From the sequence record AP017925.1: a DNA stretch of 64,000 nt, one strand, 5' to 3'. Under the pieces are notes generated by a model. The model was not told the DNA's origin. It saw only the letters and a program-made list of their open reading frames with translations, and made no database searches. Positions 33,561 to 43,294 of this stretch are shown here, one piece after another. A program made the translations under genes and the position numbers. Each line of letters opens with the position of its first letter. The first letter of the stretch is position 1.

Positions 33561-34334
33561 TTACCAGTTAGACCAAACGGCCTGCTGACGGTTCTTTGCG
33601 GCGGCAGGAAGCTCCCAGCCGAAAGCATTCATCAGCTCGTGTACGTTGAGCTGAACGCTTTCGTTGCCTACACCGCTGGCTTCGATGAGTTGGGTAGAAC
33701 CCGCCTCGACTTGACCGCGAGTGAAGGTGACGTCTTCCAAACCTTCCAGAGCCGGTGAGTTGAATTTCTCGGCGACAGCCATCCCCGGTTCGTTCACGTA
33801 GTCGAACGTGACGATCGTCTTGATGTAGCGATTGATGACGCCTCGCTCCATCCGGTCATCGGTGAACGAGCGAATCGAGAAGCACACGTTCTCGGCCGGG
33901 TTCTGGAGTTGCTTTTCCAGTACATAGCCGAGCGGACCGTTCGGCGCCACCTCAGCGAGGATGGCAACGATTGGACGACCTTGGTCGTCTTTGTAGTTCT
34001 CGAAATCCAACCAGACAGAGGCAAAGTGAACACAAACCTTGTCTTCGTGGATTTGCAACAGGCGTGCGTAGAACGCCTGCATCGACATCGCGGGATCGCG
34101 ACGGGGGTGACCATATTCGCCGCGCAGTGCGCCGCGCTTGACGCGACGCATGAACGAGCTGGATTCCTCGAAGAACTGTTTCGCGGCATCAGCGCGGTAG
34201 TACATCCCGGCGCTGTTGAACATGTTCAACGCACCAATGACCATCACGTAGTAGCCGCGCTCATTCTTCTTCAAGTCACCCACCTTGTTCGTACCGTTCA
34301 GGCGGGTACAGGTGAATGTGACGTTGTTGAACAT
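33561..34334 (-). CDS. Prohead maturation protease (gp175-like)
   Basis: LRGEYGHP (His), FSIRS (Ser) and TFDYVNEPG motifs; C-terminal ALE-G candidate autocleavage site. Confidence 0.9.
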   Translation of the reverse strand: MFNNVTFTCTRLNGTNKVGDLKKNERGYYVMVIGALNMFNSAGMYYRADAAKQFFEESSSFMRRVKRGALRGEYGHPRRDPAMSMQAFYARLLQIHEDKVCVHFASVWLDFENYKDDQGRPIVAILAEVAPNGPLGYVLEKQLQNPAENVCFSIRSFTDDRMERGVINRYIKTIVTFDYVNEPGMAVAEKFNSPALEGLEDVTFTRGQVEAGSTQLIEASGVGNESVQLNVHELMNAFGWELPAAAKNRQQAVWSNW

Positions 34335-36848: not shown

Positions 36849-39800
36849 TTAACCGCCGCGGTAAGCCTTGATTACCCGTTTCGCTGCTACCATCAGCAGC
36901 GTCGTGGTGGTTCCAATGAGGTACGGCGAGGTCACGATACGATCCGCCACCGATTTAGCACCGAAGATAGCGTCAATCTCGACACCTGACTCCGAACGAA
37001 CGTTGTCGTTGAATACCCGTCCGAAAACGGTCTTCATCTGGTTACCGAAGACGCCTTTGTCACCCACACCGGCAGACACCTTCGCACTCATGTAAACACG
37101 AATGCAAGCAGTATCCATCAACAGGGGGTCAGTGCCGATACGGAACTCATCAGACACTTGGCCAGAGTAGGCCTTACGTCCAATGGAGGTGTTCCGGGCA
37201 GCGATCTTTTTATCCGAGAACATTGCGAGGGCGCGCAGAGACGGACTCATGTCTTCGAGATCGCCGTTGTAGTAGACCTCGATGCGCTCGATCTTGCCCT
37301 TGATTTTGGCCTGGGGAGTTTGGGCACCCAGAACACGCAAGGTGTCCAGAGTTTCCTCGTCCAGGAATTGGTTTCGGGCCGAAAGCGCATCTTCAATGAT
37401 GCATAACATACTTTCGGGCTCTACCGCTTCCCCTTCCTTAACCATGCGATGAATCTCCTGGTCGAAGTTCACCACAATGTCCTTGATCTTGACCTGTTCC
37501 GTGATCAATTTCTTGGTCAGCTTCACAGAGATCGCAGACGAGTCCTCAAGAGTATCCGGCGATTCCATCAACGCCACTTTTGCCAGCGTTGCGGACTTCC
37601 AGATGATCTGCTTCGGATTGAGCATATCGCGCTCAAAGAACCCAGTGTTGTAGGCAATCGGTTCACCTACTTCAAAGGCTTGACCTACCACCATATCGGT
37701 AGCGATGGTGTGCGGAATCGTGAGACCCGCGGCATTACCGTAGCGACGCCCCAGCACCACGCCTAGCTTCTCACCGTCAGCAAACTCGACAATGATACCG
37801 TCAGGCTTGACCGAGAGCACCTTACCAGGTTTCTTGGCCGTAACTGCGAACATGTCACCAACACGGTGTGGAATCACCTGCTCGTAGCCAGTCCGTACCA
37901 TCGCTTGGGTGTAACCATCGCAGGCCACCACGTGACGGTTCTGAATACCGATAAAGTTCACCCGTTTCGGGTCGTCCTTGGTGGAACCAGGCGATACCAG
38001 TGCCGAGGTCGACAGCAGCGAAGTCGCGCCACCCGTTGCCGGGTCATACGGCTTGCTCGTACCGCGCAGCGAGTTGAACTGCGGATCAGCCGACGTAAAC
38101 ACGTTGATAGCCACATCAGACGAGTCCACCGTCGACTCAGAGATCACTCCCATATCGTTGCGGTGGTAGATACGCGTAGACTTCACCATCGAGCGCGAAC
38201 CACGACCACCCGTACCCGAGTAGGTCACTGCTTCGTTTTCTTTCAGGTTCTGGATCGGGTTGATTTCCGATACTTGATCCTTGGCCGGGTCTTGCTGGAT
38301 CGCAATCCACACAGCGTACGGATTGACTTCCAGACCGTAACGATGTTTGCCCGGACGACCGTTGTGGATACGAACGGCACGCACCAGTTCCGAATACACA
38401 GCGCCAGCAAAGCGCTCGTAGCCCTTGATCCGCATGTAGCGGGTATCTTGGCTATCCGGGTGTTTGTCGTCGGTGAGCATCTCGCTAGCCCGCACCAACA
38501 GTTTGGTAAAGACCGTCGGTTCACCCATCTCGATCAGCAGATCGCGAGTAATTGGATCGACAAACATCTGTTCCAGTTGATCCAGCTCACGCAAGTAACG
38601 CACACCCAACTTCTTCTCTTCGAAGAGGTTAAAGTACACGTCCTTCTTGTTAAACTCCTCGCTCGGGAAGCGAGAAGTCGTTTCGCTGAAATCACGCCAG
38701 CCGCCTAACACCATCGTTGCCAGCTTGTCACGACGCGAGAAGACGTACGTTTTGTCGTCGAAGTTAATCGACCACTCATCGTCCACCAGCCCAGCGCGCT
38801 TACCCACCGGCACGATTCGCATCGACGGCGGATTCAGCATGTGCAGTACGGCATCCCAGCCCAGCAGATAACCCAGCACCACACCCACCGGCACCAACTT
38901 ACTGAACACCTTCAGCTCAGCAAACTCCACTGGCGCCTTACGGGCATCCAGACCGAGGATAGTCTCGATCGACGGAGCGGCGCGCATCTCACCCTTGTAC
39001 TCGTGGATGTAGAGGTTCTCGTCCCAGCCTACCAACAGCTCAGTCTTCGTTTCCTCATGCACGCCCATTACCACCATTGCTGGTTTCATGCGCAGCGTGA
39101 TCATCTTCGACATGTCGAAGTTACACTTGAATGGCTTGCCTTCCACCATCAGCGTGAATTCACGGAAGCCCATGGCAATCGCGCTGTAGGTACGCGGCGC
39201 GTAGACTTCCTTCTCGAAAGCCGAGCCCGGGATCATGTTGGTCACGATAGTGTCCGACACGTTCAGGCCGTGAGCCATGATCGCATTGCGAATCCACTTG
39301 CCCCAGTCGTTCACACGACGTTGGCTGCGCTCAGTGAACACCTTACCGTAGTAACTGGTGAGAGCCACTTGGTCAGGCGCGATCTTACGGATTGGCATGT
39401 CACCACGCTGCATCCGCATACGGTAGTTTACACCGTTGATCTTGAAATTGCCTTCATCGTCAACCTTCGGGATCTTCATCGGGATCGTCGAAGCAGCGCC
39501 CTCGATCGGTTTAACCCGGATGCTGTACTCGTAATGGGAGCCGGTGATGTCTTCCACCTCTTCCATTTCGTAGTTGTCAATCATCACGCCGGCTGATTGC
39601 AGTTGCGACACCATCGACGAGATGTCGCGTTGCATCACTTCGCGAGAGTAGCGCTTGTTCCAATCCAAGAGCGAACTCTTGAGCATGGTTTTGTCCACGA
39701 TGGTCTGTTGATCAGGAATCGCTGGCGACTCTTCGATCTTCAGCTTCTCAGGTGGAACCTTGACGAACTCAGCCATCGTGCCTTCATGACCAAGCGGAGC

Positions 39801-41297
39801 CGGTGACTCATTGAAGCGTTGGCTAGCTTCCTGCATGCGGCGGTATTCAGCCGCAGTGATAGCACCAGTGTCAGCCGAACGAGCCAGCAGAGCCTGGAAG
39901 GCTTCGTTGTGTTCCGTCGGAAAGAACTTCGGAGCCTTGTGTGGTTGCATGTGCTCCGGAACATCGCCGTGTCCTTGTACCTGACCATGGGCTACTTGAG
40001 CCTCGTGGTGCTCCGGTTGTCCGTGCGCTACCGCTACCGGATGTGCAGAAGCATGGACTTCAGCCTGCTGAACCGGACTGTCGTCGATACCGGAGTCAGC
40101 TTCTTCCGTTTCATCCGGAATCTCGGGCAACGGGGCATTTTCATCACCCTGACCCGTGATTTCCAGAGCTTCCAGATCCTTGTCGATCTCAGCCAGGAGA
40201 TTCAGACGATCGGTTTCCTCGTCATAGCCGGCGTAAGCTTGCGCTTCGGTCAACTCTCCGTCTTGCGTCGACGACACCCGCGGAGAACCGCTGGCTTGAT
40301 CCGGAACTTCATCCGGCTGAGCATCATTCTGCGCGGCTTGATCATCCAACACCTGGGTGCTGCCCTGAGTGAGATCATCGTCGAGGCTTTCCGGCAGATC
40401 CTTGTTACGGACTTCGGTAATAGCCATCAGCATGCGCAGGAATACCTTTTGCAGCTGAGACGGCGCCCAGTTGCCTTCCTTAATAGGAGGCAGTTCCGGA
40501 TTCTCTTCCAGACGAGCAGCGTACTCGGCTTCCTCGTGACGCGACGGCTTGCGCCATTCTTCGAACAGCGCCAGATCCAGAATAGTAAAGCGCTCACCTT
40601 CACGCAGGATCAGCTTCACATTCGTGATATCCGGAATGTACTTGTGGATCAGACCAGTGTGACGATCTTCACCCATCCAGATCCAGAGATGATGCAGGAA
40701 GATCAGCTCGTAGCTGTTGAACACGCGCATGTTCCGCGTATTCCATCCCATCACCGAACGATCCAGCACCGAACGAGCCGGTAGCTGCTGCGGCAATTGC
40801 AGCTCGATGTACTGATGGTAACCGGTCTTAGTGTTCTCGCCGATCGTGTGGAACATCGTCGCGAAGACGTTGTGCCAGCGATTGTGGAACGTGAACAAGT
40901 TGCGCTGGTACTTAAAGCGAGTCAGCAGCAGACCGTAGTTGTGCGTCACGATAGCGCGCGGATCGCGCTTCATCGTTTCGACATCCATCGATGCACGGAA
41001 CCGTGGGTTCTTCTGACGGAACACACGGATCTTGGCATTGACATCACCCGGGATCGGACGCGGGTTACCGCGATTCTCCACCAGAGTGGTGTGGTGAGTG
41101 ATGCGCAGCGGTTTGGTGTTCCGCTGATAGAACAGCATGTCTTCACTCGGCCACGGGTTGGTTGCCGACGGGCTGATGTAGTGAACCATCGCCAGATTCG
41201 GCAACTCGAACCGTGTCACCAACGGGATCGGCGGCTGAGTGAATTGCGCTGTTTTACGCAACACGAAGTTGCGGTAAAAAGTTTGGTATTGAATCAT
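36849..41297 (-). CDS. Virion RNA polymerase beta subunit (gp178-like)
   Basis: 1482 aa; YSGTGGRGSRSM, DDPKRVNFIGIQ and VGDKGVFGNQMK RpoB-type motifs. Confidence 0.92.
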   Translation of the reverse strand: MIQYQTFYRNFVLRKTAQFTQPPIPLVTRFELPNLAMVHYISPSATNPWPSEDMLFYQRNTKPLRITHHTTLVENRGNPRPIPGDVNAKIRVFRQKNPRFRASMDVETMKRDPRAIVTHNYGLLLTRFKYQRNLFTFHNRWHNVFATMFHTIGENTKTGYHQYIELQLPQQLPARSVLDRSVMGWNTRNMRVFNSYELIFLHHLWIWMGEDRHTGLIHKYIPDITNVKLILREGERFTILDLALFEEWRKPSRHEEAEYAARLEENPELPPIKEGNWAPSQLQKVFLRMLMAITEVRNKDLPESLDDDLTQGSTQVLDDQAAQNDAQPDEVPDQASGSPRVSSTQDGELTEAQAYAGYDEETDRLNLLAEIDKDLEALEITGQGDENAPLPEIPDETEEADSGIDDSPVQQAEVHASAHPVAVAHGQPEHHEAQVAHGQVQGHGDVPEHMQPHKAPKFFPTEHNEAFQALLARSADTGAITAAEYRRMQEASQRFNESPAPLGHEGTMAEFVKVPPEKLKIEESPAIPDQQTIVDKTMLKSSLLDWNKRYSREVMQRDISSMVSQLQSAGVMIDNYEMEEVEDITGSHYEYSIRVKPIEGAASTIPMKIPKVDDEGNFKINGVNYRMRMQRGDMPIRKIAPDQVALTSYYGKVFTERSQRRVNDWGKWIRNAIMAHGLNVSDTIVTNMIPGSAFEKEVYAPRTYSAIAMGFREFTLMVEGKPFKCNFDMSKMITLRMKPAMVVMGVHEETKTELLVGWDENLYIHEYKGEMRAAPSIETILGLDARKAPVEFAELKVFSKLVPVGVVLGYLLGWDAVLHMLNPPSMRIVPVGKRAGLVDDEWSINFDDKTYVFSRRDKLATMVLGGWRDFSETTSRFPSEEFNKKDVYFNLFEEKKLGVRYLRELDQLEQMFVDPITRDLLIEMGEPTVFTKLLVRASEMLTDDKHPDSQDTRYMRIKGYERFAGAVYSELVRAVRIHNGRPGKHRYGLEVNPYAVWIAIQQDPAKDQVSEINPIQNLKENEAVTYSGTGGRGSRSMVKSTRIYHRNDMGVISESTVDSSDVAINVFTSADPQFNSLRGTSKPYDPATGGATSLLSTSALVSPGSTKDDPKRVNFIGIQNRHVVACDGYTQAMVRTGYEQVIPHRVGDMFAVTAKKPGKVLSVKPDGIIVEFADGEKLGVVLGRRYGNAAGLTIPHTIATDMVVGQAFEVGEPIAYNTGFFERDMLNPKQIIWKSATLAKVALMESPDTLEDSSAISVKLTKKLITEQVKIKDIVVNFDQEIHRMVKEGEAVEPESMLCIIEDALSARNQFLDEETLDTLRVLGAQTPQAKIKGKIERIEVYYNGDLEDMSPSLRALAMFSDKKIAARNTSIGRKAYSGQVSDEFRIGTDPLLMDTACIRVYMSAKVSAGVGDKGVFGNQMKTVFGRVFNDNVRSESGVEIDAIFGAKSVADRIVTSPYLIGTTTTLLMVAAKRVIKAYRGG

Positions 41298-41299
41298 GG

Positions 41300-43294
41300 T
41301 TAATCCAGACGAGCGATGTCAAGCGTGTCCTGATCGATGAACTTGATCTGAACTTCCTTAACACCTTGGTCGTAAAGCTTGCGCAAACGATGGTTACCGT
41401 CGAGGACGTAGATCTTGCCTTTCTCACGAATGGCGATCAACGGGAACTGGGTATCAGCGTTCTTCACGCGTTCTGCATCCAGATCCTTAGCATCCTTGAC
41501 ATTCCACTCGACGTCCGACATCTTCACCGTTTCCGGTTTGATGTGTTCGGCAACATCGAGAACGTCATTCAGATCATACTTCACGCCCCAGTGGGAGAAT
41601 GAGCCACCTTCCTCTTCCTGATAGCCTTCCAGCGCATTTACCAGCGAGAAACTCTCGACAGCAGGCTTGGCTGGTTCACCGGTGAGACTATGCAGCACCA
41701 GCTCCACGGTATCCACCGCGCAGCTATAGAGCAGCTTGCCATCAGTACCGATATAGGCTTTCTTAGTCTGGAAGAACTTCTCGGCTTCAGCAATAGCCTC
41801 ATCCGAGTAAGCGATGTTGCCAGAGGCCGTGTCGCCATCGAAGTCAGCGCCCAGACGCTTCAGGTGGCTGGAATGCGGGATCAGAGAGTTCACAAAAGCA
41901 GAACCCTGAACAGGGAACTCGTAGGCAACATAATCGTCACCTGCATCGATCCAGCTTTCATCCAGCATACGGCGTTCTTCGTAACCAACCGTCACCCGCA
42001 GGTGCGTCTTGCTCGGATAGATCGAGCCGATACCCGTTACCGGATAGCGAGTCACGAAGAGTGGGTATTTACTAAACTTGCGATACACGGACAAATAAAA
42101 CAAGTCCGTGAGCGTCAGCGGTCGCACATGTTCGCGCAGACGAGTCGGGGGGAGCTGGTTGATGTCATTGAACACCTTGAACGTACCATCCGGCCCCAGA
42201 TACAGCAGACCCAAATAGTAACCGTCAATCACCAGCGGGGTATTACGGATGTCCTCTTCCTTGAAAGAAGAGATGATCTTTTCGATCCCTTCCGTCGTGG
42301 CCCACTTGTCGTAGTAGCGCACGTGCAGGAAGACATCGCGCGGCCGCAGGGTTTTCGGGTCAACCAAAATGGCGGGCGAATTGACGTCCGGGAACATCGG
42401 TGCGAGGAACTCACGCACAGCGGCAACCGACACCGGCAACGAGGCCTGGAGATATTGGTATAGACCGATGATCGTGGAGTTGAAGCCCGGGGTGCCTTTT
42501 TTGCCCAGAACCGGCACTGCCGTGTTCATGGCGGTGATCACGTTTCGTGTGCCGTTGAAGATACGACGGGAAGCAACTTTACCGAGGAAGAGTTTCTTCT
42601 TCCCCTTGATCAGCGCCTCGATCATGTCGTACAGCGCCACGAAGTTCAGCTGCATGTCAAAACGCGGCTTGTCAATCACTTCAGCGTTGGTGTCGATAGA
42701 CGACTCAACGATCACGTTCGAGAGTGCGATGAACTTGCGGTACAGAACGTTGACTTCGTCTTCGCTCTTGCGGTTGAATTCATCGATTTCCAGATCGCGC
42801 AAGCCCGCCGGCATCACGACGATGTAGCGGGTAAGTCCCGTCTCTTTATGCGCTTCGACGAGCTTGATGTACTCGCTACGCAGGTTGGAGTTACCTTCCT
42901 CGTAAACGATGTCCTTCCAGTGCTCCAAGAAGAACGCATAGCCCGTGCGAGCCCCTTCAGAGGGCTTGGCCTTTACGAAGTCCTTCTTGCTGTCGTCCCA
43001 GAGCGCCCACACTTTGCCAGCCATGATGTCGCCATACATGCGCTTGAGCTTGGTGATCGCCATGAAAATGAGCGGGTGGAAAATGGGCGCCTTGACGTCG
43101 ATATAACCAAACAACAGGTTTCGTCGTTCGTCACCGACCCGGCCAAAGATTTCGGTCGAGAAGAGGCCTTCAGGGTGAAAGTTGGTAGTCGCGCCATCCA
43201 AGATGTCGAGCGCTTTCACCTGCTTGACGCTCTTCAACTTTTCAGGTGTGAGATGGAGCAGCCCGATGTTAAAGGGCACAGACATTTTTTGCAT
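41300..43294 (-). CDS. Virion RNA polymerase beta-prime catalytic subunit (gp180-like) with C-terminal ParB-like extension
   Basis: GADFDGD catalytic triad; FHPEGLFSTEIFG, RYPV and RRIFNGTRNVIT motifs; last ~95 aa contain PLIAIR..YVLDGNHRL. Confidence 0.92.
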   Translation of the reverse strand: MQKMSVPFNIGLLHLTPEKLKSVKQVKALDILDGATTNFHPEGLFSTEIFGRVGDERRNLLFGYIDVKAPIFHPLIFMAITKLKRMYGDIMAGKVWALWDDSKKDFVKAKPSEGARTGYAFFLEHWKDIVYEEGNSNLRSEYIKLVEAHKETGLTRYIVVMPAGLRDLEIDEFNRKSEDEVNVLYRKFIALSNVIVESSIDTNAEVIDKPRFDMQLNFVALYDMIEALIKGKKKLFLGKVASRRIFNGTRNVITAMNTAVPVLGKKGTPGFNSTIIGLYQYLQASLPVSVAAVREFLAPMFPDVNSPAILVDPKTLRPRDVFLHVRYYDKWATTEGIEKIISSFKEEDIRNTPLVIDGYYLGLLYLGPDGTFKVFNDINQLPPTRLREHVRPLTLTDLFYLSVYRKFSKYPLFVTRYPVTGIGSIYPSKTHLRVTVGYEERRMLDESWIDAGDDYVAYEFPVQGSAFVNSLIPHSSHLKRLGADFDGDTASGNIAYSDEAIAEAEKFFQTKKAYIGTDGKLLYSCAVDTVELVLHSLTGEPAKPAVESFSLVNALEGYQEEEGGSFSHWGVKYDLNDVLDVAEHIKPETVKMSDVEWNVKDAKDLDAERVKNADTQFPLIAIREKGKIYVLDGNHRLRKLYDQGVKEVQIKFIDQDTLDIARLD

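Follow-up and report, generated by a model that had tools for sequence, protein, structure and literature searches.

Why would a bacteriophage extend the catalytic subunit of its virion RNA polymerase (RNAP) with a small domain of the ParB/sulfiredoxin (ParB/Srx) type? This question is raised by open reading frame (ORF) 039 (positions 41300..43294; this and all other coordinates given for the window refer to the minus strand) of Ralstonia phage RP31, a phiKZ-related jumbo phage. The window analyzed here is the first 64 kb (64,000 nucleotides) of its genome (AP017925.1). ORF039 (GenBank BAW19302.1) is matched by the RNAP subunit profile phrog_2986; its orthologue in phiKZ is gp180, which makes up the N-terminal half of the virion RNAP's beta-prime (RP31 ORF39 in the orthology table of Matsui et al., 2017, PMC5468394). 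It reads through its polymerase core into an extra C-terminal domain. The fusion is genuine, the domain belongs to a small family that recurs as solo genes and on other phage proteins, and the fused protein occurs in virions at its full-length mass. We favor, with a probability of about 0.5, an explanation in which the polymerase would deliver an autonomous nucleotide-dependent module as cargo, the module remaining mostly tethered to its carrier.

An additional domain on the virion RNAP subunit

ORF039 encodes 664 amino acids with a computed mass of 75.2 kDa, of which residues 1–538 are covered by phrog_2986 from its first to its last position (E = 7e-211). The catalytic ADFDGD loop lies in this core at about residues 483–489, in agreement with a preliminary description of the locus, made from the sequence alone, which had named the carrier as the catalytic virion RNAP subunit. 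Matches to gp180 homologues, surveyed in about 290 phage records, ended at RP31 residues 538–546. Moreover, the protein of the close relative FLC9 (52% core identity) ends three residues past LTG (LTGYDS), and the true C-terminus of the phiKZ protein, encoded in exon 2, lies a few residues past TGEP (...MTGEPKQRD). We therefore regard residue 542 onward as an addition to an RNAP core that spans residues 1–541 and ends at LTGEP (41672..43294). The core end, VELVLHSLTGEP, reads uninterrupted in frame into a 16-residue linker (residues 542–557, AKPAVESFSLVNALEG, 41624..41671) containing two A-x-E motifs, and then into a 107-residue domain (residues 558–664, 41303..41623). The domain had been put at ~95 amino acids; its conserved part, which begins with the invariant tyrosine of GYQEE, is longer, at ~107.

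The fusion is not a sequencing artefact, a candidate that we rejected on the basis of its conservation in four isolates and in metagenomes. The same in-frame fusion is present in the independently sequenced phage RP12 (98.5% identity), and it also occurs in FLC1-1B and FLC4-3B (58% identity within the domain), in the metagenomic proteins P0003 and P0001, and on two contigs from metagenomes, L007 and L008, of which L008 has a core only 47% identical to that of RP31. A soil-metagenome contig spanned the junction colinearly and free of indels; in this read check we found relatives in metagenomes but no sequencing run of the RP31 isolate itself. The polymerase fusion is thus real and limited to a few lineages, namely RP12/RP31, FLC1-1B/FLC4-3B and a few metagenomic phages. 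It is absent in about 290 other phiKZ-like phages, among them FLC9 and, at 42% core identity, RSF1 and RSL2.

We also examined the immediate borders of the gene. Its TAA stop codon (41302-41300) is followed by a spacer of 2 nt (CC), rather than the 3 nt described before, and then by the ATG (41297) of ORF038, the virion RNAP beta subunit (36849..41297; phrog_3148, E = 0). A longer, 783-aa reading frame that opens with TTG was rejected as the gene: it overruns the start and promoter region of the divergent ORF040. The true start is the ATG at 43294, giving 664 amino acids, because the RNAP profile begins there.

The DFDGD motif of the same gene is interrupted by group I introns in other phages. 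The preliminary description had placed an HNH gene of phiKZ, gp179, in the slot of the extra domain. That gp179 encodes an HNH protein holds (HNH_3), but the gene sits within a group I intron interrupting gp180 at DFDGD and does not follow the end of gp180. In phiKZ (L015:8473-10101; NC_004629.1, about 186158-187786), the RefSeq coding sequence of gp180 stops at ...LGAD, the intron core (Rfam, 92.2 bits, E = 7e-24) follows gp179, and an unannotated exon 2 (FDGDTVSF...RYMTGEPKQRD, then a stop codon) occupies a 500-nt gap before gp178. Matches to Goslar, OMKO1, RTH11 and PDCC-1 likewise stop at RP31 residue 484, which suggests that these phages share the insertion site. A phiKZ intron had been predicted earlier (Mesyanzhinov, 2002), and a 2023 long-read transcriptome of phiKZ saw no splicing. 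On the metagenomic contigs, a group I intron inside the DFDGD motif of the beta-prime N-half gene was found at L008:2084-2468 (RF00028, 57.6 bits, E = 5e-13) and at L007:2-120. There, exon 2 runs from FDGDT to LTGDP and on into the ParB/Srx domain, and has been gene-called as the separate 147- to 148-aa proteins P0042 and P0102.

A minimal ParB/Srx family and its fusion partners

Next, we asked what the added domain is. It matched phrog_17560 (E = 6e-19), a profile of 119 positions whose function is not assigned and to which no Pfam model corresponds. Single-sequence scans against Pfam and NCBIfam returned sub-threshold matches only, the Pfam model ParBc_2 scoring 20.7–21.2 bits against RP31 and family members (cutoff 23.6). 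A profile built from the family was more sensitive and matched SbnI (E = 4.8e-7) and, less closely, ParB (E = 0.077) in the PDB. An AlphaFold2 (AF2) model of the domain reached a mean predicted local distance difference test (pLDDT) score of 86.6, falling below 50 for model residues 1–6 (part of the linker) and 7–11 (the start of the domain). The top 50 Foldseek matches of this model in the PDB all belonged to the ParB/Srx superfamily (Srx, SbnI, SerK, ParB, Noc, KorB, PadC and Osa), with a probability of ~1 and template modelling (TM) scores of 0.45–0.5, and VIA-align gave Z scores of 5–6.9 against superfamily structures. Neighbours in AFDB/BFVD, small predicted proteins including gp75 of phage EL, are named ParB/Sulfiredoxin (TM 0.65–0.79), and an ESM-Atlas feature search agreed with this placement. 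These structural comparisons all recovered the superfamily core, a fold of alpha+beta type that has four strands plus conserved helices. Profile and model thus agree with the ParB/Srx assignment proposed at the outset, and we consider superfamily membership, as judged from the predicted structure, to be solid.

In an alignment of 79 homologues, the invariant residues were the tyrosine of an N-terminal E-x-Y-Q-E-E motif, a proline, and the aspartate, glycine, histidine and arginine of DGxHR (D81, G82, H84 and R85 in alignment numbering). In RP31 the latter motif reads DGNHR (residues 632–636, 41387..41401) and corresponds to the phosphate-binding motif of the superfamily; in alignments its counterpart is DGVHR in SbnI and GERR in ParB. 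The N-terminal tail, with its invariant tyrosine and nearly invariant glutamate (90% or more), is specific to this family and falls where the AF2 model has low confidence.

How much of the chemistry of the known relatives can be carried over to this family? The closest solved structures by profile are those of SbnI and SerK (PDB 5UJE, 6NR6 and 5X0B), which bind nucleotides (adenosine diphosphate and monophosphate complexes) and share with the RP31 domain a proline-hydrophobic strand and DGxHR. The equivalent of SbnI D58, the aspartate of DGxHR, is conserved as well. We nevertheless rejected membership among the free serine kinases, as the column equivalent to Glu20 is variable (D/K/Q/A). The RP31 family also lacks the C-terminal domain of SbnI and SerK, and the NCBIfam SbnI model scored 12 bits (cutoff 350). 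Sulfiredoxins carry their catalytic cysteine within a GGCHR motif. A sulfiredoxin assignment was rejected too: the variable position of DGxHR was N, L, F, A, T, V, Y, E, M, S or W in the aligned homologues displayed, never cysteine.

The comparison with ParB, Noc and KorB bears on the suggestion that the domain gives the polymerase a cytidine triphosphate (CTP)-sensing or DNA-clamping arm. The RP31 domain has the fold of their N-terminal domain (Z about 6), and its G-x-[HR]-R aligns with GERR. Unlike these proteins, however, the RP31 polypeptide has no helix-turn-helix (HTH) domain, no dimerization domain and no ParA partner. Structural alignments end at about BsParB residue 106, and ORF039 stops two residues later. 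Box III (of the ENLQRE type, completing the CTP pocket), which we take to lie beyond about BsParB residue 106, appears to be absent. We rejected the canonical ParB CTP clamp as a model for the domain; the absence of the HTH and dimerization domains and, apparently, of box III makes such a clamp unlikely and speaks against the suggested arm. Nor did the family fall under the Pfam model of DdrB-like ParB (presumably PF18763), which matched none of the 79 members scanned at E ≤ 0.01 and gave no match to the RP31 domain at E ≤ 1. Judged by its conserved positions, then, the chemistry of the relatives is not transferable to this domain: the Glu20 equivalent of SbnI, the cysteine of Srx and box III of ParB are not conserved.

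The extent of the family became apparent from an exhaustive HMMER search, which returned 615 representative clusters at E ≤ 0.001, compared with only two proteins from a word-indexed homology search. Not all of the 615 are genuine: among the best 151, 117 contained the whole domain and the other 34, which lacked a full-length domain, were spurious and were excluded, 32 of them being long multi-stretch proteins. Three of these (P0006, P0010 and P0013) were rejected as homologues, their Pfam assignment being NHL beta-propeller repeats that mimic the stretch G-K-I-Y-V-L-D-G-N-H-R, and 29 further long multi-stretch matches were similar. We noted that GKIYVLDGNHR produces repeated false NHL-repeat matches with E values down to 1e-20, a trap for motif or single-sequence searches.

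Of the 117 genuine representatives, 79 stand alone, with a length of at most 170 aa, and the remaining 38 are longer proteins. The nearest of the solo homologues, at 58% identity, is encoded within an array of ~100-aa genes on a 243-kb contig, gp10 of Erwinia phage Parshik sits at the start of its genome together with tRNAs and small genes, and EL gp75 is likewise a small gene standing alone between small ORFs. From gene context, therefore, the solo copies of jumbo phages (~110 aa) look as if they reside in early-gene-like territory, far from polymerase genes. The longer proteins combine the domain with portal and inorganic pyrophosphatase (P0149), MuF (P0110 and P0043; two or three MuF cases), ART-PolyVal (P0035), chitinase/lysozyme and ParB_N (P0024), M48 peptidase (P0052), GNAT and SUKH (P0044, P0134 and P0125), and NUDIX (P0141 and P0073). 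In two further jumbo phages it forms the C-terminal module of PA5oct gp140, a structural protein by mass spectrometry, and of Xoo-sp14 gp126 (L006:2184-5318; phrog_3004), a core phiKZ-type virion protein.

In Xoo-sp14 gp126, a poly-acidic linker of ~70 residues precedes the domain, which has DGMKR in place of DGxHR, and the Xoo-sp14 genome has a second domain match elsewhere. That gp126 is a portal protein was not confirmed: it had no Pfam match, and its homologue carries a portal annotation in one phage, Serratia phage Yaphecito. The metagenomic protein P0004 (481 aa) has two tandem copies of the domain (13–115 and 124–235) ahead of a phrog_29772 domain.

Such recurrent, combinatorial fusion with MuF, portal, ART, peptidase and lysozyme domains matches the repertoire of polyvalent proteins, which are packaged in phage heads and injected; effector domains have also been described on N4-like virion RNAPs (Iyer, Burroughs, Anand, de Souza and Aravind, 2017, PMC5512222). 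The RP31 fusion resembles these systems in that an effector-type domain is joined covalently to a head-packaged, injected protein, in the partners that its family has in common with them (MuF, portal, ART-PolyVal, InPase, lysozyme, GNAT, NUDIX and SUKH), and in that modules of the ParB/Srx superfamily are a recognized component of polyvalent proteins (PMC5512222). It differs in its carrier, a subunit of a split multisubunit beta/beta-prime virion RNAP instead of a single-subunit N4 RNAP or a MuF protein, and in the domain, which belongs to a distinct and smaller ParB/Srx family than DdrB-like ParB. Taken together, gene contexts and domain partners suggest that phages repeatedly see to it that the module is there from the very start of infection.

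Packaging in the virion and the A-x-E linker

Analysis of purified RP31 virions identified ORF39 from 26 unique peptides covering 41% of the protein, a number that ranks second in the virion table, for a low-copy protein; its observed mass was 74 kDa compared with 75.2 kDa in theory (Table S3, PMC5468394). In phiKZ, gp180 bearing a C-terminal sfCherry2 was packaged and co-injected with the DNA (bioRxiv 10.1101/2024.03.24.586471), so the gp180 C-terminus can carry cargo through the whole cycle. The two cases are alike in having a C-terminal appendage on the same subunit; they differ in that sfCherry2 is an artificial reporter and the RP31 domain is natural, conserved and enzyme-like. By analogy, we infer that the RP31 domain would be delivered into the host. 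Of the two earlier proposals, that the module is packaged on the polymerase and that it is ejected with the DNA, the first fits the detection of ORF39 in virions and the fusions to virion proteins, and the second is consistent with the behavior of gp180-sfCherry2.

The preliminary description had further proposed that the module is clipped off at A-x-E sites during maturation. The two motifs, like DGNHR and the open frame, were found exactly where they had been placed. AVE (residues 545–547, 41654..41662) is followed by serine, and ALE (residues 554–556, 41627..41635) directly precedes GYQEE; both are candidate sites for the prohead protease. Both have the S/A/G-x-E form of substrates of the phiKZ-type prohead protease and lie in an accessible region, the linker, whose ALE-containing end falls in the stretch that AF2 modeled with low confidence. 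At the level of the whole protein the motifs exceed chance. In RP31, two A-x-E motifs fall in the linker, taken as 21 residues for this count, and one in the 643 residues elsewhere (Fisher p = 0.003); the figures for FLC1-1B are three in 31 linker residues and one in 640 (Fisher p = 0.0004), P0003 has two of its three in the linker (p = 0.006), and P0001 has one there. Correcting for the A/E-rich composition of the linker reduces this to roughly p = 0.02–0.08 per lineage, by our own estimate. AVE-547 is replaced by AIE in RP12, AME in the FLC phages and ALE in P0003, and ALE-556 by AVE in FLC1-1B, FLC4-3B and P0003, ATE in P0001 and STE in P0042; KLE in L007 does not fit. Thus the linkers diverge between lineages in length and sequence and the A-x-E motifs persist. 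We also noted that the remainder of ORF039 is poor in the motif (one in 643 residues, with about 2.9 expected for the whole protein), as are FLC1-1B and P0003, a depletion that might have arisen because an enzyme packaged in the head avoids protease sites.

The likely protease is encoded nearby by ORF034 (33561..34334), a head maturation (prohead) protease that matched phrog_3014 over its full length (E = 1.4e-94). It is annotated merely as a putative virion structural protein and is syntenic with phiKZ gp175 near the virion RNAP beta gene. A comparison is offered by the RP31 capsid protein, ORF090 (L014; RP31 102057-104216), in which APALE-S occupies residues 126–131. The PAVE-S of the linker resembles this PALE-S, whose ALE-130 coincides with the position of a mapped cleavage site in SPN3US, ATE-130. 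From this likeness, the RP31 capsid protein is predicted to mature at ALE-130 to 63.9 kDa. It is nonetheless listed at 75 kDa, with a coverage of only 25% (Table S3, PMC5468394), so the virion table probably scored a minor uncleaved fraction. Since it gives the capsid protein near its unprocessed mass, the table is a weak test of processing. With this caveat, ORF39 was listed at 74 kDa, the cleaved core would have a mass of 61.8–62.8 kDa, and a 62-kDa band was analyzed in which ORF39 was not listed (PMC5468394). These data do not favor routine clipping during maturation, and we regard cleavage of most ORF39 copies as somewhat doubtful.

Possible roles of the module

Our preferred explanation is that the C-terminus of ORF039 in RP12/RP31, FLC1-1B/FLC4-3B and a few uncultured relatives has gained a ParB/Srx domain of 107 residues, self-contained and attached through a flexible linker, and that this module would ride on the polymerase subunit into the prohead and be co-ejected with the DNA, probably staying tethered to the polymerase in most copies. 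Carried on a co-ejected subunit, it would already be present at genome entry. Inside the cell it might then catalyze a nucleotide-dependent reaction in the service of host takeover or counter-defence. Because the DGxHR pocket is invariant, nucleotide binding or phosphoryl transfer is the most likely activity, that is, nucleoside triphosphate (NTP) binding or hydrolysis or a phosphotransfer; DNA nicking seems less likely, and a ParB-like clamp is disfavored because there is no DNA-binding domain.

Several observations weigh against this explanation. The residues on which SbnI, Srx and ParB depend (the Glu20 equivalent, the cysteine and box III) are not conserved in the family, none of whose members has a known activity. 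The domain is dispensable for polymerase function, as FLC9, RSL2 and RSF1 do without it. Peptide positions in the virion analysis are unpublished, and detection in virions concerns ORF39 as a whole rather than residues 558–664. Lastly, the linker is enriched in A-x-E motifs, one of which resembles the predicted capsid maturation site, so some or all copies could be cleaved.

This last point leads to the possibility that the polymerase is a carrier only: ORF034 would cut at AVE-547 and/or ALE-556 as the head matures, freeing a ParB/Srx effector of 12.5–13.4 kDa that remains in the head until it is ejected on its own. In its favor, every lineage of the Ralstonia clade has clustered A-x-E motifs in the linker (two in RP31, three in FLC1-1B, two in P0003 and one in P0001), PAVE-S is capsid-like, and the protease gene is three genes away. 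Cutting after ALE would leave GYQEE..., the N-terminus seen in solo homologues, and the residue four positions before the invariant tyrosine is alanine or serine in fusions whereas it is hydrophobic in solo proteins. A virion RNAP beta subunit has, moreover, been reported to be processed in 201phi2-1. However, ORF39 ran at 74 kDa and was not listed for the 62-kDa band, the corrected motif count is only marginally significant, L007 has KLE, and the glutamate of ALE belongs to the conserved E-x-Y motif of the domain itself. The literature on SPN3US maps 14 cleavages: 13 take off an N-terminal propeptide, the only cut at a C-terminus is that of the protease itself, and virion RNAP subunits are left uncut. 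On balance we find such release doubtful. Less likely again is its fullest form, in which the polymerase is a capsid-targeting vehicle, cleavage of the linker in the head frees a 12.5-kDa ParB/Srx mini-enzyme, and the ejected enzyme performs a new nucleotide-dependent reaction of counter-defence or takeover in the early-infection vesicle. Such an arrangement would recall T4 IPI-III and Alt, early-acting proteins brought into the head by a targeting moiety with protease motifs at the junction. In T4, however, the moiety is a short N-terminal tag removed by the prohead protease, whereas the putative carrier in RP31, also on the N-terminal side, is a functional 62-kDa enzyme subunit whose cleavage is itself putative.

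Alternatively, the domain may serve the virion RNAP itself, by sensing or binding NTPs, tethering the polymerase to the genome end for co-ejection, or aiding prohead entry. It is covalently attached, by gel mass, to the catalytic subunit of a five-subunit enzyme whose assembly has to precede packaging and which must be rearranged to be ejected, and ParB/Srx domains bind nucleotides and in some cases DNA. Yet about 290 phiKZ-like phages, including relatives at 42–52% core identity, have the polymerase and not the domain, and the domain also occurs in solo genes at a distance from those for RNAP, as well as on such unrelated carriers as portal, MuF, ART, lysozyme and NUDIX proteins. It has, besides, no HTH or dimerization domain with which to clamp DNA. 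We therefore consider an accessory arm improbable. The least probable account, in our estimation, is a neutral or selfish fusion, in which a small mobile gene of jumbo phages landed between the genes for the beta-prime N-half and beta, was joined by loss of a stop codon and is tolerated without a role, or acts as a propeptide discarded after assembly. The patchy distribution would fit, the locus is a known landing site of mobile elements (in phiKZ and L008, of group I introns and HNH genes), and the gp180 C-terminus tolerates foreign cargo. Against this, the fusion persists across lineages with cores only 47% identical, and the invariant Y, P, D, G, H and R are kept in RP31, RP12, the FLC phages and metagenomic fusions at 33–68% identity. 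As all family-invariant residues are kept across the fusions, the domain appears to be under purifying selection.

Parts of this picture were already known: UniProt flags the ParB/Srx fold of relatives automatically, and both the polyvalent theme and effector-bearing N4 virion RNAPs have been published. What is new is the use of a split, multisubunit phiKZ-type virion RNAP subunit as carrier, the recognition that PHROG 17560 is a mini ParB/Srx family in its own right with ties to injected proteins, and a junction rich in protease sites.

What shields the genome of a phiKZ-like jumbo phage and gets it started in the first minutes, before the protein nucleus forms, is an open question in which injected proteins are central, and at the RP31 locus a natural enzyme-like module is attached to an injected polymerase subunit. 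The system is tractable, with a sequenced phage, a virion proteome and natural relatives with and without the domain, and polymerase subunits as carriers of cargo are relevant to the engineering of protein-delivering phages. Clip-and-release with a new early reaction would, if true, give a function to a large ParB/Srx phage family. More broadly, the locus points to a widespread, little-studied mini ParB/Srx family that, as early-like small genes or as head-packaged fusions, would be present at time zero of infection.

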